From positions 62,001 to 126,000 of the forward strand of contig MU008191.1 of the NCBI GenBank assembly GCA_010909165.1: a stretch of DNA of 64,000 nt, written 5' to 3'. How positions within the stretch are numbered: position 1 is the first letter of the stretch; the number at the start of each line of letters is the position of its first letter. This DNA is from Anthoceros angustus (taxonomy: Eukaryota; Plantae; Anthocerotophyta). The notes under the pieces were generated by a model. That model saw nothing but the letters and a program-made list of their open reading frames with translations. It had not been told where the DNA came from and ran no database searches. Below, one piece after another: positions 1 through 43,471 of this stretch. A program made the position numbers and the translations under genes.

Positions 1-2100
1 CCGACCACCTCTTGGCGTGGTTTCACTGCCCCGGTCCTTGAGTCTCACCCACATTGGGTTGCCTGCAGTAGATGTCGAGAATACCTTTAAATACCTTTAA
101 CAATGTGTCTAGGGCCGTCATTTCTCGTAACTCGGGGGCGGTGGGCACCTAGCGGGCTCATTCCATTTGTTCGCTCCTTCTACGGTTCTCCGCCTAATCT
201 CTACTATCAACATGGTCAAGCTACGATTCGTTCTCCACTCAAAGGCGGGCTTAAAGCAAGAGGATCCATTGGGCGCCCTCTTTGTCATGGCGCATTCATG
301 TCCTCCTGACCTCTGCAGGGCCGGGAGTGCCTTTTCCCATCCGTGGCTGACGATACCCATATCCTTGGGGCAGGGGACAAGGTGAGGGATGCCTTTGATC
401 TCTTCTCCTTGGAGCTCTCCCATACAGGATTAAGGGTCAAGATCGATAACTGTTGGGTGTGGTCCGCTTCCGGCAATACACCCCCTCTTCACTATCCAGG
501 GGGGGGATATTATTTCTCCGCAAGGGCTTCGGGTCCTCGGAGTTCCGCTGGGTCCCCCAGACTTTATTCAAGGGTTTGTGGACGTGGCTCATATTGGGGA
601 CCTTTCATAAATTGGGGACCCTTGGGTTGCGTTTGGTATTTTGTCTTCCTGCTTCGCACGTCGACCGGGTTATCTTACCAGGATGATTGCTCCATCCCCG
701 GCCTTTTTATCAAAGTTTGAGACATTTTGATAGGCAAGTTATGCAGGCGCTTGGGGACATCATAGGCCCCGACAGCTTCGAATGCGCCGACGGTGACTTG
801 GCGCGGAAACATGCATCATTGCCAGTAGCCTTTGAAGGCATTGCCTTGCTGGCCATGGAGGCCTCGGCTCCGGCAGCTTTCCTTGGGAGTTGGACCCTCT
901 CTGCCCCAATTTTGGCCTCTCGGTTCTTAATGCAAGACTCCCCCCTTCTGGAAGCCTTCGTCTCGAGTGTTGAGGAGGGGGCCTTCCCCTTGCAGGTCTC
1001 TTCGAGGCGGGCTAGGGACTCCCTTTTTTCAGAGGCTAGGGAAGCCATGCCTCCTTTTTCCTCTTTCTTTAGGGAAGGGATGCGTGGCCTTCAAGCCTCT
1101 TTCCAGGAGGTGCAATATTTACAGGCGCAAAGAGCCCTCCTTTTGGACTCCTCCATTCCCACCTGCATTTTTGTTCGGGGAAGGGGGCAGGCTCCTGGCT
1201 TCTGGCTCGACCTTGTATTCAGGCGTTTCGAATCGCACCAGCATCCTTTTCGACCGCGATGAGGGTCCGCCTCGGTTTGGCTCATCCTCTGGCCTCTTCT
1301 CTTTCCACGTGAGTTGTGGAGCTACCATCGACGACTCCGGGTCCCATTTGGTGCGTTGTCCCGTAGGGTGGCAACGTATTGCTACGCATGACGCCGTTCG
1401 CGACGTCATGTTTTCGATAACTAAGGAGAGAGGATTTCTTCCGTATAGGGAACGCCCATATATATTGCGTAATGGCGTGTCACTCAGAGCGAACCTTTTT
1501 TATACTAGGGGGGAGCAAATTTACATCGCTGATGTGGTTGTCACGGATCCCACGAGGAACTCTATATGCGAGCACATCATCATCAAGCCCCTGGGCTGGG
1601 CGGCAGAAGGATGGGCAACCAACAAGACTCACAAGTATTCTCCCATGCAAGACGGCCATGTTTTCATCCCCCTTGCCCTCGAGACTCATGGGGCTATGGA
1701 CAAGGACTTCTCTAGGTTAATTAAGGAGTGTGCAAAAGCCTATCACAGCCACAGGAATTGGAGGGGCCTCCCCCTTTCCTCTGTGGTGGCTTTCTTTCGC
1801 TAGCGGGTTTCCATAGCTCTACATAAAGCGCTGGCTAGCGTTGTTTATAGTACGGCTACATGTGCAGGCCTACCGACTTCTTCAACACCGATGGTAGGTA
1901 GGCCCTTCATCATCCCTGATCACGATATCATTGGTGCTGTAGGTAGATACGGGAAAGGCATTCGAGGTGACTAGGATTTCCCCTTTTACCATTAGCCCTT
2001 TTTGGGTTGTTCCTTCTCGGACTTCAGGGGTAGATGGGATTTCCCATCTCGTCTATTAATAACGTCTACTCTATTTCTTATACATATGATATATTATAAA
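1..2100 (+). mobile_element. Decayed CRE-clade non-LTR retrotransposon (RT + CCHC + restriction-like endonuclease); 5' part lies outside the window
   Basis: Frameshifted RT motifs: DVENTFN (~67), LKQEDPLGALF (GxxQGDPLxPxLF-like), ADDTHILG (YADD-like), GLRVK, and the thumb motif HASLPVAFEGIAL..AFLGSW. These are followed by CGATIDDSGSHLVRC (CCHC), RIATHDAVRD, IADVVVTDP, K..KY and FIPLALETHG, typical of RLE-type elements. The frame continues past the TAG at 1801-1803 (R*RVSIALHKALA) to a TAG at 1972-1974. The 3' end position is approximate. Confidence 0.8.
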
Positions 2101-2127
2101 TATTAAATAATTATATATATTATGAAT

Positions 2128-2436
2128 AAAATATGATGTAAAATATGTTGTAATGGTGTAATATGATGTACATGATGTAAAATATGTTGTAAGAATATTG
2201 TAAAATACATTGTATCATATGTTGTATCATATATTGAACTGTATGTTGTAAAATATGTTGTAAAATATGTTGTAAAATATGTTGTAAAGTATGTTGTAAA
2301 ATATGTTGTAAAATATGTTGTAACATATGTTATAAAATATGTTGTAAAATATGTTATAAAATATGTTATAAAATATTTTGTAAAATATGTTGTAAAATAT
2401 GTTATAAAATATGTTGTAAAATATGTTATAAAAATA
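2128..2436. repeat. AT-rich 12-bp minisatellite (AAAATATGTTGT / AAAATATGTTAT)n
   Basis: Directly visible tandem array; purest from ~2241 to 2436 and degenerate towards 2128. Confidence 0.95.
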
Positions 2437-2952
2437 CCGAGTTTTCTTGGAGTGGAACTACGGCTTTGTGAAAGGTACTTCATACCATAGGTGCTCTTGT
2501 ATGGAATACTGATCTCGTCACTAAGCCGGGTGTGTGTGACAAGTTTTCTTCCGTTTTCTGATGCTGCGCATCTTCAAGATTCCTTCATCATCATCATGGA
2601 CGGCCGTAGGCGCTACAAAGTTTTTGTCTGCAACTTGCCCCTCGTGTTCGATCTAAATCATCTACTTTTCTTTCTGCCATTTAGGGCTTTTGTCAAACAC
2701 ACATACTCATGTTTAGGGTTTTCCTGCACCACACATGGACATATATATCGGATCGGACATGTTTCGGCCCCGGTGGAAGCCCCTAAATGTGGACATGTTA
2801 GTCGTTCAAGACTGCGTTTCCCTTTCACCGTCGCGCTGACAATGTGGATTTCTTTGTTCTGTCCTTTTGAGACATGAGCCCAGTGGTGGCTTTCTTCTTG
2901 TCGAATGTAAAGTCTGCATCGGTGAAGATGTTGTGGGCAATCGCGCGAGGCC

Positions 2953-3400
2953 TGTATGGCTGCCAAATGCAATCACGCGAGCCCTGGATGGCTGCGAAAG
3001 CTAGGCGCGCGAGGCGTAGATGGTACCTATAGCCTATTAGCCACAAAGGCTGTATGGGCATGAAAGCGATGGCGGCTGTATGGCTGCGAAGCGATGGCGG
3101 CATGTATGGCTGCGATGGCGGCCTTTGTATGGCTGCGAAGGTAGTGGTGCTGTATGGTGCGATGGCGGCATGTATGGCTGCAGCGATGGTGGCTTTTGTA
3201 TGGCTGCGAAAGCGATGGCGGCTTTTGTATGGCTGCGAAAAGGTAGTGGTGGCTTTTGTATGGCTGCGATGGCGGCCTTTGTATGGCTGCAGCGATGGTA
3301 ACTGTATAGGCAGCGATGGCGCTTTGTATGGCTGCGAAAGCGATGGTAACTGTATAGGCTGCGAAAGCGATGGCGGCATGTATGGCTGCGAAAGCGATGG
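2953..3400. repeat. ~27-30-bp minisatellite (GTATGGCTGCGAAAGCGATGGCGGCT..)n inside the TIR element, array 1
   Basis: Tandem units visible; they account for the repetitive spurious ORFs in this interval. Confidence 0.9.
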
Positions 3401-3981
3401 CGCTCGGCGGATGGCTCGTCACGCTATTTGCCATAAAGGCTTGGTGACGGTTTTACGGCAAACCGACGGGCAAATGGGGTCATGCGAATGGATGTGCGAA
3501 GGCCCATGTTCGACCTAAAAAGAAAACCTTGTGTCACAACCTAAAAAGAATCTTCACACACACCACGAGCTTAGTGACGAGATCGGGACACGAGGGCCAG
3601 CGCCAACGGCCTATGTCGTCAAGTGTGTGACATCGAGTTTTCCCGTGTCACGGCGAAAACTCTTTATCACCATCGAAAAAAACCCTAAAGGGCTTGGTAG
3701 CGAGATCGGGACACGAGGACAGCGCCAACGGCCTATGTCGTCAAGTGTGTGACATCGAGTTTTCCGCACCACATGGACATATATATCGGATCGGACATGT
3801 TTCGCCCGTGGAAGCCCTAAATGTGGACATGTTAATCGTTCAAGATCAAGGCTTTTCCCTTTCACCGACAATGTGGATTTCTTTGTTACATCCTTTTGAG
3901 ACATGAGCCCAGTGGTGGCTTTCTTCTTGTCGAATGTAAAGTCTGCATCGGTGAAGATGTTGTGGGCAATCGCGCGAGGCC

Positions 3982-4340
3982 TGTATGGCTGCCAAATGCA
4001 ATCACGCGAGCCCTGGATGGCTGCGAAAGCGATGGCGGCTGTATGGCGATGGTACCTATAGCCTATTAGCCACAAAGGCTGTATGGCTGCGAAAGCGATG
4101 GCGGCTTTTGTATGGCTGCGAAGCGATGGTGGCTGTATGGCTGCGAAAGCGATGGCGGCTGTATGGCTGCGAAGGTAGTGGTGGCTTTTGTATGGCTGCG
4201 AAGCGATGGCGGCTGTATGGCTGCGAAAGCGATGGTGCTTTGTATGGCTGCGAAAGCGATGGCGGCTTTTGTATGGCTGCGAAGCGATGGCGCTCGGCGG
4301 ATGGCTGCAGCGATGGCGGCATGTATGGTCGCGAAAGCGA
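3982..4340. repeat. Same minisatellite, array 2, part of a ~1-kb internal duplication (about 2722-3765 repeated at 3765-4680)
   Basis: Flanks such as CACCACATGGACATATATATCGGATCGG and GAGACATGAGCCCAGTGGTGG occur twice about 1.04 kb apart; the second copy has small deletions. Confidence 0.85.
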
Positions 4341-5387
4341 TGGCGCTCGGCGCGGATGGCTCGTCCACGCTATTTGCCATAAAGGCTTGGTGACGGTTTC
4401 CTTACGGCAAACTGACGGGCAAATGGGGTCATGCGAATGGATGTGCGAAGGCCCATGTTCTGACAGCCCTAAAAAAGAAAACCTTGTGTGTCACAACCTA
4501 AAAAGAATCTTCACACACACACCACAGGCTTAGTGACGAGATCGGGACACGAGGGACAGGCGCCAACGGCCTATGTCGTCAAGTGTGTGACATCAGAAGT
4601 TTTCCCGCCGTATGCGGCGGGAAAACTTCTTTTGTCACCATCGAAAAAAACCCTAAAGGGCTTGGTGACGAGATCGGTATTCCATACTCTTGCAGGCTAT
4701 GAGAATCTATATTATCTTTCCTCGCTAGTTATGTTTCTTATACCAAAACATAAAGTCTACAAATCTGCAATGCAAGGAATCAAAACCATTGCTAAAGATT
4801 TCTCCTCTTATTATTGATGTATTTTTGAAGTAAAATATTAAAAAAAATCTGCAAGGCAAGGACAAGCTGACCTTCGGGGACCCCATAAATGGAGAGAAGA
4901 AACATGTACAACCTCACCTTCAAAACACCAAAAATGCGTGCTTCAAAAAACGATATGTCCCTGTGAGCAACTTCCAGTTTGTCTGAGAGACTGGAAGCGG
5001 CGAAGCCAAACGCGGCTGGGGAATCGGGACGACCTCCTTCAACACCGGCGATGCATACGGACCAGGGAGCACAGCTGCGTCTGCACGTCGACGCCCTACC
5101 AAACCGAGATGCAGTGGCCGCTGTCCGATGGAAAGCAAGGCGTTTGGGGCGTATCACTGGCAGTCGGAGTCCTTGCCGCTCGTCGAGACTTAGTTCAAGG
5201 GAGCATTAGCAAAAGGTGCATCCATCTCTCCACATCTGTTTCCTTGGCTGACGTCCTTGATACTTGACATCGTCCCCTCCCTTCCTCTCACGTATCCTGG
5301 ACCCCCAAAATTTTCCCACAGGAAGTCGCGACGAGCTTGGGAGACGGGGCCCGGGAGATCGATGAATCGGAGAAAGAGAAAGGCGAG

Positions 5388-7482
5388 ATGTTGCCCCTCC
5401 TGCTTCCCCTGCTGGTCGTGATATTGAGCTTCCGTACGAGTGCGCAGAATGTGGACTTCTCCTTCAGCAACTTCACCGGAGCAGACATCAAGCCGAGCGG
5501 CAACTGCACGGTGCTGCAGGGAGGAGTTTTGCAGCTCATTGTGAATTCCAGCGATCCGCATCGGGATGCAGGCCAGAAGCTCGTGTCCAGAGTAGTGTAT
5601 GCCGACCCGGTGCGGTTCTACGATGCGGGGACCGGTGCGGAGGCTTCCTTCAACGTCTCCTTCACTTTCAGGATGAAGGCGGTGCCGGGGAAAAACATGG
5701 AAGACGGGATGAGCTTCATCATCGCTCCCAGCTACGGGGCGCCCCTGGTCGACCGCGGCGGTGACCATCTGGGTCTCTACGAACCCGCATATCCTGACGG
5801 GGATCCCAGATTTAAGTCTTGGCCGTGGAGTTCGACACGTTTTCCAACAAAGGCATCGATCCCGTGAACGATTCCAACCACGTCGGGCCGGACGTCAACA
5901 GCGTTAACTCTGTCAAGACCCAGACCCTGTCTGTCTATGGCATTGAGCTCGACAGTTCTGCTCCCGACGCTCCTCCCGACCCTCCCATCGTGTCGGTTTG
6001 GATCGACTACTCTGCGGACATGCAGGAGCTGGTGGTGTACATGGCCGTGGGTAGGTCCGTACACAAATCTGAGGCTCCTGCTGTGCTTTCTTACAGCGGC
6101 CTGAACGTGTCCAAGATCGTTAAAGGCCATTCCTATGTGGGTTTCACGGCTAGCACAGGCGTCTACGTCCAGAACAACTACGTCTACGAGTGGAGCTTCT
6201 CCACCCACGGCCTGCCACAACCTCCCCGTAGGCCTGCCCCTCAGAGCAGCAAAGGCAGGACTGGCTTGATTGCAGGGGCTGCAACAGGAGCAACGCTTCT
6301 GGTAGTTGCTCTCGGCTGCGGCCTTTGCTGGTTCTTGTGTTGCAGATCTGGTGGGTCTTCCGAGCACAGCCGGGTTCTCATGATGGGGGACAAGGCACCG
6401 ACGTCATCATCCACATGGACAGGAAGGATCTCCGATCCGTCAGGCACTTTTTGTTCCTTGGAGGGTTTGGATGTGAGCTTCGGGATTCGCACCTTCACCT
6501 ACCAGGAGCTCCAGAGGGCAACTCTAGGGTTCCGCCAGGCACTGATACTGGGGAAAGGAGGGTTCGGGACTGTGTACCTTGGGGTGATGAGGGTTGGAGA
6601 TTCAGAGGTGCAGTTGGCCATCAAGAGGATCGCGCATGATTCTAGGCAGGGAGAGAGGGAGTTCCGAGCGGAGCTGAGGAGCTTAGGGCAGCTGCGGCAC
6701 AGGAACCTGGTGCATCTCCACGGCTGATGCCAGGAGGGGAACGAGCTCCTGCTGGTGTATGAGTATATGTCAAACCTGAGCCTGGATCGGCACCTCTACT
6801 ACAACGAGCTGGTTCTGTCCTGGACGGATAGGTTTCGTATTGTCCGAGGGATTGCAGCGGCTTTGGTTCACATCCACACGGAGTGGAAGAAATGCATACT
6901 GCACAGGGACATCAAGCCCCAGCAACGTGATGCTGGACTCGGATATGGAAGGCCGGTTGGGAGACTTTGGCTTGGCCCGCCTGGTGGAGGAAACTATCAC
7001 GACGGGTCTCACTCTGACAATGCCTGGCTGGGACAAAGGGCTACATGGCTCCGGAGCTTGCACTGGACGGGAAGGCCACGGCCAAGTCGGATGTTTTCAG
7101 CTTTGGGGTTTTGTTGCTGGAGGTGGCATGCCGCAGGAGACCGCAGATTCCCACCCTTGAAATTCAGCTGCTGGAGTGGGTGTGGCAGTTGCAAGAAGCT
7201 GGCACCCTCTTGAATGCGGCGGATCCAGCTCTGGACGGCAAGTTCGAGGCTGCGCAGCTCACCTGTGTGCTGCATGTCGGATTGATGTGCACCCACCCGG
7301 ATCCCAGCTTGAGGCCTTCCACTAGGCGCGTGCAACAGTTCTTGGACGGAGATGCTGACCTACCTCCGCTCCCCAGGTCGAGACCAGTTGCGGTGTACGG
7401 CAGCAGCTTCGATCTCCAAGGCCAACACACTCCCCAGGAATCGATGCTATCATTCCCAGAGATGCCCTGGTTGGAGAGCTGA
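5388..7482 (+). pseudogene. Intronless L-type (legume) lectin receptor-like kinase with 3 frameshifts and 1 in-frame stop; pseudogene or assembly errors
   Basis: Signal peptide MLPLLLPLLVVILSF; lectin motifs LAVEFDT, NHVGPDVNS, YVGFTASTG, YVYEWSF; TM LIAGAATGATLLVVALGCGLCWFLC; kinase motifs GKGGFGTVY, AIKRI, HRNLV, HRDIKP, DFGL, GYMAPE. Lesions at ~5815, TGA 6725-6727 (HG*C in place of HGWC), ~6920 and ~7024. Confidence 0.88.
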
Positions 7483-41293: not shown

Positions 41294-43471
41294 GTGCAGC
41301 GAGTGCCAACAATCCTCATCACTGCTCTCACACCCGGCAGTGACAGTTGCTCCTCATGGTACTTAGACAGCGGAGCTTCGCTCACATCTGTAAGCAGCTG
41401 CTTCTCCACCTACAAACCACTGCAGGAGGGAGGGCTGATTTATGTTGCAGACAACCGGACTGCAAATGTTTGTGGCACTGGCACGGTTACCCTAACGTGC
41501 AAGACTGGTGGCACAATAACCCTGACAGACGTGCTTCACGTACCTAAGGTAGCAAAGAACCTTGTCTCAGTGAGCAGCCTGACAGACGACAAGAAACATG
41601 AGGTACACTTCAAGGCCCAGAAGTGTGAGATTTCCTTGTATGAAAATCCCCTTGCGGTTATCTGCCACGGAGAGAAGGAGGATCGGCTCTACACTCTTGA
41701 AGCGACTGCTACCCTTGGATCAACCCCCTTGGCTCAGACTTCAAATAAATCAGAAGTAACAAAGCTATGGCATCTACGCTTGGGACATCCCAATCTGAAG
41801 CGTATGAAGGAGATGCAGGCAGGTCAGCTATATGCAGAGCCTCTACCTGAGTTCAGTGACTCGCTCTTCTATGAGGGCTGTCTGCTCGGTAAAAGTAAAG
41901 AGACACCATACCCTCGTGCCTCCACTCACCGTGCAACTGAGCTACTTCAGCTGGTACACATCGATCTCTGCGGGCCTATGTCAACTCACTCGTTTGGAGG
42001 AGCATCTTACTTTATGCCCGTGGTCGATGACAAATCCCGTATGGTTCACACCTATTTTCTGCGTCTCAAGAGTGAGGCTTTCGCTAAGTTTCGGGAATTC
42101 CATGCGATGGCAGAACGTCAGACTAGCTGCAAGCTTAAATGTGTGCGCTCGGATGGTGGAGGTGAGTTCATGTCTGCTGAGTTCACCTCCTACCTCTCTG
42201 ACCGAGGAATAACTCGACAGGTGACTGTTCCCTATGCTCACGCACAACACGGTGTTGCGGAGAATTGTAATCGGCGTTTGCAGGAGATGGCCAGGGCCAT
42301 GTTGGCTCATTCACATCTGTCACATGGTTACTGGGCTGAGGCAGTTTGCACTGCCACACACTTAGTGAATCGTCTGCCCACATCTGCACTCCTGGACATG
42401 ACACCCTTTGAGGTTTGGAGTGGCATCAAGCCCTCCTTGACCCACCTTCGTGTGTTCGGGTCTGAAGCTTACTCTTGGATTCCCAAGGAGAAGCGCCATG
42501 CTCTTGATTCCAAGACTAGTAAATTCGATCCTCGAGCACAGAAGCGCATATTTGTTGGATATATGGACGGGGTCAAAGGCTACAAGCTCATTCACCCAAA
42601 CTCCCATCAGGTTACAATCTCTCGGAGTGTTTATGTGCGTGAACACCTGGATTCCTCTTCTAGTTTTACAGGAGACAGCGGGAGTCTCATTGGCTCTTAC
42701 CCCGACCTTGACTCCTCTGCTCGCCATGTGGAGGAGGACATTGAGCCTGAGATTGAGATCCCTGAACAACGCTCCGTGCACCAACCCCTTGGTCAACCCC
42801 CTGCTCAGGCAGATCCATTGCTCTCTCCGGTCGTCCATGCTGGAGGAGATCAGGATGCTGGCGGAGACCAGGATGTTGGAGGTGATCAGGATGCTCACTC
42901 TTCTAACTCAGCTGCAGCACAACCTTCTTCCGCTGCGACCATCATTCCAGAGAGACGTCAATCTACCAGAGTTCGTAGGCGACCTGCTTATCTGGATGCC
43001 AATCATGTCCCAGGAGATGCTCTACAGCAGCCAACTGTTCCTCAACAGCCTAACATTGTAGAAGCCGCTCCTGATGCTTCTGAAATGGAAACCATGTCCC
43101 AGCGATGCAGCATGAGGCCCCGAACAATCTCATGGCAAGGGCTATCTTGCCACTCATGTGCTAGAGCCCGCAAGCTGGAAGAAGCACTCAAATCCCCTGA
43201 CAAGGAAGGGTGGATCAAGGCAATCCAACAGGAGTACGATTCACTCATCGAACTAAAGACATGGGTGCTCACCTCACTCCCTCCCGGTCGCAAGGCCATT
43301 AAATGCAAATGGACCTTCAAACGAAAGCTGAAATCTGATGGAACAACAGAAAGACTCAAGGCAAGGCTGGTGGTCAAGGGCTACAGTCAAAGGCCTGGCC
43401 TTGACTACGGAGATAACATTTATGCACATGGTGGCTGCTCAATCTGCCGATTCCTTCGGCAATTGCGGTGA
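41294..43471 (+). CDS. Copia pol segment (protease, integrase, start of RT); 725-aa open frame within an otherwise frameshifted polyprotein
   Basis: ORF track; motifs as listed for the element. Confidence 0.9.
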   Translation: MQRVPTILITALTPGSDSCSSWYLDSGASLTSVSSCFSTYKPLQEGGLIYVADNRTANVCGTGTVTLTCKTGGTITLTDVLHVPKVAKNLVSVSSLTDDKKHEVHFKAQKCEISLYENPLAVICHGEKEDRLYTLEATATLGSTPLAQTSNKSEVTKLWHLRLGHPNLKRMKEMQAGQLYAEPLPEFSDSLFYEGCLLGKSKETPYPRASTHRATELLQLVHIDLCGPMSTHSFGGASYFMPVVDDKSRMVHTYFLRLKSEAFAKFREFHAMAERQTSCKLKCVRSDGGGEFMSAEFTSYLSDRGITRQVTVPYAHAQHGVAENCNRRLQEMARAMLAHSHLSHGYWAEAVCTATHLVNRLPTSALLDMTPFEVWSGIKPSLTHLRVFGSEAYSWIPKEKRHALDSKTSKFDPRAQKRIFVGYMDGVKGYKLIHPNSHQVTISRSVYVREHLDSSSSFTGDSGSLIGSYPDLDSSARHVEEDIEPEIEIPEQRSVHQPLGQPPAQADPLLSPVVHAGGDQDAGGDQDVGGDQDAHSSNSAAAQPSSAATIIPERRQSTRVRRRPAYLDANHVPGDALQQPTVPQQPNIVEAAPDASEMETMSQRCSMRPRTISWQGLSCHSCARARKLEEALKSPDKEGWIKAIQQEYDSLIELKTWVLTSLPPGRKAIKCKWTFKRKLKSDGTTERLKARLVVKGYSQRPGLDYGDNIYAHGGCSICRFLRQLR

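Follow-up and report, generated by a model that had tools for sequence, protein, structure and literature searches.

A probable non-autonomous DNA transposon of IS3EU/GingerRoot type in the hornwort Anthoceros angustus

In the genome of the hornwort Anthoceros angustus, a stretch of about 2.2 kb is bounded by terminal inverted repeats (TIRs) and flanked by a short direct repeat, which raises the question of whether it is a transposon insertion and, if so, of which group. We analysed it within a 64-kb stretch of DNA, referred to here in its entirety as the window. Read directly from the window, the element occupies positions 2500-4686 (2,187 bp, 52% G+C) and ends in TATGG...CCATA. Its two 28-bp TIRs pair at 26 of 28 positions; the left one begins TATGGAATACTGATC, and the right one, as reverse complement, begins TATGGAATACCGATC. 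Directly outside both TIRs lies CTCTTG, a perfect direct repeat (Table 1). The 8-bp flanks, TGCTCTTG on one side and CTCTTGCA on the other, are not identical; the direct repeat measures 6 bp exactly. A repeat finder returned TIR arms of 29 nt with 93% complementarity once the adjoining G/C pair was counted, and the same 26/28 without it. Scanning the 64-kb window for a 22-nt TIR pattern with up to three mismatches gave two places only, which are the two ends of the element (chance expectation 0, from 100 shuffles). A second scan of the whole window, which looked for TA..TA pairs no more than 30 kb apart whose TIRs match at 15 or more of 20 positions and which are flanked by a perfect 6-bp repeat, returned the element and nothing else. 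The preliminary description of this locus had reported 28-bp TIRs (26/28) with CTCTTG repeats, and direct reading, repeat finder, shuffles and window scan all bear this out. The element is thus confirmed as a real TIR transposon insertion of ~2.2 kb.

We considered whether the same arrangement could exist without any transposon insertion, either because chance or recombination left a local tandem duplication enclosed by an inverted repeat, or because of an artefact of assembly. Within the 64-kb window neither the element nor its flanks were found a second time, and frame breaks in the neighbouring gene hint at indel errors in the assembly; both observations lend this explanation some credit. 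However, chance is not expected to yield a 26/28 inverted repeat bordered right at its outer edges by a perfect 6-bp direct repeat, nor do indel errors produce such a structure, and we judge this explanation very improbable. Exact scans of metagenomes with the TIR and with a 30-nt subterminal repeat gave 0 matches, in collections that appear not to contain this genome; such zero counts carry no information on how many copies it has.

Table 1. Features of the element and its target site (positions within the window).
Feature	Position	Strand	Basis or content
Left target-site duplication CTCTTG	2494-2499	.	Same hexamer outside both TIRs; no other TA..TA pair in the window has a 6-bp repeat
Left 28-bp TIR, starts TATGG	2500-2527	+	Direct reading, repeat finder, pattern scan
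Inverted copy of 18-bp TIR core (GCTTAGTGACGAGATCAG)	2509-2526	-	Motif scan
Tandem unit 1	2718-3709	+	27-bp minisatellite at about 3062-3402; direct copies of the TIR core at 3569-3586 and at 3692-3709
Tandem unit 2	3759-4677	+	Minisatellite at about 4077-4345; direct TIR-core copies at 4528-4545 and 4660-4677
Subterminal palindrome near right end	4587-4638	.	Repeat finder: 24-nt arms, 92% complementary, 4-nt loop
Right 28-bp TIR, ends CCATA	4659-4686	-	Direct reading, repeat finder, pattern scan
Right target-site duplication CTCTTG	4687-4692	.	Direct reading

Looking for coding capacity, we detected no Pfam domain in seven ORFs of the element at E values up to 0.1. A protein word search with the left-end ORF and one internal ORF found no similar protein, and eight ORFs of the window, looked up exactly, were absent from the protein collection. 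Between positions 1800 and 5400, no Rfam family was found at E values up to 0.1. Given no Pfam, protein or Rfam match, we regard the element as non-coding and non-autonomous. The initial proposal of a non-autonomous TIR element thereby holds, with seven ORFs lacking a Pfam match and two lacking a similar protein.

The ends of the element invite comparison with IS3EU and GingerRoot, which form one lineage with 99% bootstrap support (Kojima and Bao, PMC10045372). Every complete IS3EU family has TA..TA termini, and the target-site duplications (TSDs) usually measure 6 bp (Kojima and Bao, PMC10045372). GingerRoot of Selaginella lepidophylla likewise has a 6-bp TSD, with TA...TA ends in 72 of 77 intact elements, and among plants GingerRoot was detected in mosses and lycophytes (Cerbin et al. 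2019, PMC6839031). In rust fungi, IS3EU families with a transposase show 6-bp TSDs and end in TAYGG..CCRTA (Kojima 2025, PMC12730594). The hornwort element has CTCTTG on both sides and TA..TA ends that also conform to the TAYGG..CCRTA of the curated fungal families. Since one insertion was observed, its TSD length rests on that single case. Under the Repbase rule, non-autonomous elements are placed by equal TSD length and by their terminal positions 1-11, which must align with no more than one mismatch; our comparison with the published IS3EU motif covers five terminal bases only, all of which match. From these sequence features we infer, with a probability of roughly 0.7, that the element is a non-autonomous cut-and-paste DNA transposon of IS3EU/GingerRoot type with a 6-bp TSD. 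The preliminary description had seen an IS3EU-like signature in TATGG...CCATA with a 6-bp repeat, and the published families agree with that view (PMC10045372, PMC6839031, PMC12730594).

With IS3EU/GingerRoot the element shares TA...TA termini, a 6-bp TSD, a TIR-bounded cut-and-paste layout and a non-seed land plant host, and the group contains many transposase-less copies with rearranged interiors. Its TIRs, at 28 bp, are shorter than the 100-150 bp published for Selaginella GingerRoot and the more than 30 bp of fungal IS3EU; TIR length is a descriptive rather than a defining feature of the group. The element measures 2.2 kb, whereas intact GingerRoots span 3.9-12.9 kb, and it carries neither a transposase nor a captured gene fragment. 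It also differs in its host, a hornwort, and hornworts are not mentioned in the 2019 survey (PMC6839031). The rust-fungus IS3EU elements with TET/JBP genes have the same five-base terminal motif, TAYGG..CCRTA, and the same 6-bp TSDs (PMC12730594). Those, however, are large and autonomous; they carry alpha-kinase and TET/JBP genes besides the transposase and have TIRs of more than 30 bp, in contrast to the gene-less plant element described here.

The flanks can be parsed in a second way, already raised in the preliminary description and literally present in the sequence, in which the element runs GTATGG...CCATAC with TCTT on both sides. The element would then have a 4-bp duplication and be a member of a superfamily with TSDs of that length, for example Sola. 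This parse gains from the adjoining G/C, which lengthens the inverted repeat to 29 nt, and from the presence of TCTT on both flanks; Sola itself has 4-bp TSDs and very variable termini and occurs in mosses (it is known in Physcomitrella). The two parses differ in the coincidences they demand. A 6-bp duplication needs one 1-in-4 coincidence, namely complementarity between the hexamer's first base and its last. A 4-bp duplication needs two: the base preceding the left TCTT must be identical to the final base of the right TIR, and the one following the right TCTT to the opening base of the left TIR. The flanks of a single insertion do not settle the matter strictly, but by this count 6 bp is favoured about 4 to 1. 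Moreover, placing TATGG outermost reproduces the published IS3EU terminal motif (PMC12730594). Sola would resemble our element in being a group of TIR elements found in bryophyte-grade plants, with a TSD length suited to the alternative parse, but it demands the less parsimonious reading of the flanks. A 4-bp parse with TCTT is possible, though less likely, and we hold this reading, Sola-like or other, to be unlikely.

The exact 6-bp repeat, within 8-bp flanks that differ, rules out hAT, Mutator, CACTA, PIF/Harbinger and Tc1/Mariner. Elements of these groups have TSDs of 8 bp (hAT), 9-11 bp (Mutator), 3 bp (CACTA), 3 bp (PIF/Harbinger, TWA) and 2 bp (Tc1/Mariner, TA); these lengths are those of the established transposable-element classification reported by Wicker and colleagues in 2007. 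We also rejected a solo LTR, which needs TG...CA ends, usually a 5-bp TSD and only short inverted ends; the element has TA...TA at its ends, TIRs of 28 bp and a repeat of 6 bp. Dada, according to Kojima and Jurka in 2013, reportedly inserts into multicopy small-RNA genes with a TSD of 6-7 bp.

Dada also figures in a broader alternative, under which the element has a 6-bp TSD but belongs to Ginger2/TDD, Polinton, Dada or an undescribed transposase family that mimics IS3EU ends. In its favour, Ginger2 and Polinton are likewise associated with 6-bp TSDs (PMC6839031), and the element itself has been linked to no transposase. Against it, Ginger elements end in TG...CA and Polintons in AG...TC (PMC6839031), whereas the element has TA...TA; we rejected Polinton on these ends, and Ginger1/Ginger2 (TDD) as well, because the required TG...CA termini are missing and, when the ends are moved outward to TG, neither a corresponding CA nor a TSD results. 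For Dada a small-RNA gene would be expected as target, and the Rfam search of 1800-5400 (E up to 0.1) revealed no RNA family at or near the site, which led us to reject this group too. Overall we give this set of alternatives a small probability. We consider it improbable, too, that the element represents an undescribed hornwort TIR lineage that is IS3EU-like only at its tips, be it a GTATGG family with a 4-bp TSD or a 6-bp family with a non-IS3EU enzyme.

Inside the element, the interior consists of a ~1-kb tandem duplication. Outside the minisatellite, the two units are ~89% identical with gaps counted and ~95% identical at aligned bases; each contains a minisatellite of roughly 27 bp. A motif scan of the element finds the TIR's 18 inner bases (GCTTRGTRRCGAGATCRG) at five places. 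One copy is inverted and lies in the left TIR, and the other four are direct and lie in the right half, the last of them inside the right TIR. Between the left end and the internal copies, the repeat finder detected inverted similarity over 36 nt at 81% and over 28 nt at 89%, and this similarity reaches inward to about position 2546. The junction of the ~1-kb duplication falls inside subterminal repeats of ~122 bp, a placement that points to unequal recombination between those repeats.

As a separate observation, we counted 24 occurrences of the heptamer TGTATGG within the element (2953-4328), always on the + strand and as part of the minisatellite unit. The same string is formed at the left end by the last two bases of the TSD followed by the TATGG terminus. 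This identity between minisatellite and left junction may be due to chance: by our estimate, a 27-bp unit would contain the pentamer in roughly 1 of 20 cases.

Starting from the observed TIRs, 6-bp flanking repeat, missing coding capacity and internal repeat anatomy, we propose the following history. The element would be mobilised in trans by an integrase-like DDE transposase, encoded at another place in the genome, that binds its 28-bp TIRs and probably the repeated 18-bp TIR-core motif too. After cleavage at the TA ends, this enzyme would place the element into a target opened by a staggered cut of 6 bp, the repair of which would leave the CTCTTG duplication. With a 6-bp duplication, the site before insertion would have read ...GGTGCTCTTGCAGGC... 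with a single CTCTTG. Before or after insertion, unequal recombination between the ~122-bp subterminal repeats may have enlarged the interior by the ~1-kb tandem duplication, with minisatellite expansion as a second route of growth.

The window contains L-type lectin receptor kinase, ankyrin-repeat and PRPP synthetase genes as well as a Copia-type pol ORF. The last of these, at 41294-43471, encodes a Copia-type polyprotein with gag-pre-integrase, rve and RVT_2 domains and marks an LTR retrotransposon. The L-type lectin receptor kinase gene has its ATG at 5389, and the element's right end lies ~700 bp upstream of it, an ordinary place for a DNA transposon and one with no shown effect. The kinase gene (5389-7482) is split over three reading frames, and one break, near 5815-5822, resembles the loss of a single base in a T run; either the gene is a pseudogene or the assembly contains indel errors. 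A protein word search with the kinase ORF gave no match at E 1e-20, a threshold that may be too strict, and a full HMMER search found relatives only at 41-54% identity. The closest relative found is ~70% identical in DNA to the window gene. It is an intact gene for a 719-aa lectin receptor kinase at 446-2605 of L001, a Logan contig of SRR33208241 with 58% G+C. At 3 kb, this contig holds too little upstream DNA for comparison. Two further contigs with kinase matches, L002 and L003, have a GC content of about 40% versus about 53% here and so probably come from other plants. No TIR core was found in L001, L002 or L003.

To the left of the element, a minisatellite at 2172-2433, made of about 22 copies of a 12-bp unit (ATGTTGTAAAAT) with 86% matches, ends 60 bp short of the insertion, and AT-rich repeats to its left reach back to about 2078. 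Farther left, at 343-1803, lie overlapping ORFs of 125-278 aa with no Pfam match at E values up to 0.1, and they may be a decayed repeat.

How unexpected is an element of this type in a hornwort? The preliminary description had placed IS3EU mainly outside land plants, a view that is outdated, as GingerRoot, of the same lineage, has been known in lycophytes and mosses since 2019 (PMC6839031, PMC10045372). The surprise value of the locus is consequently much lower than was stated there. GingerRoot is ranked among the plant DNA-transposon superfamilies and is absent only from the angiosperms analysed to date. In the searchable literature we did not find IS3EU paired with hornworts or with Anthoceros, and the 2019 land-plant survey covered mosses and lycophytes only for this group (PMC6839031). 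At best, the element extends the host range of the group mildly. If confirmed across copies, it would enlarge the IS3EU/GingerRoot inventory of a hornwort by one short non-autonomous family and would help to complete the transposon annotation of this genome. Its five-fold 18-bp TIR-core motif is, in addition, a candidate binding site of plant IS3EU/GingerRoot transposases.
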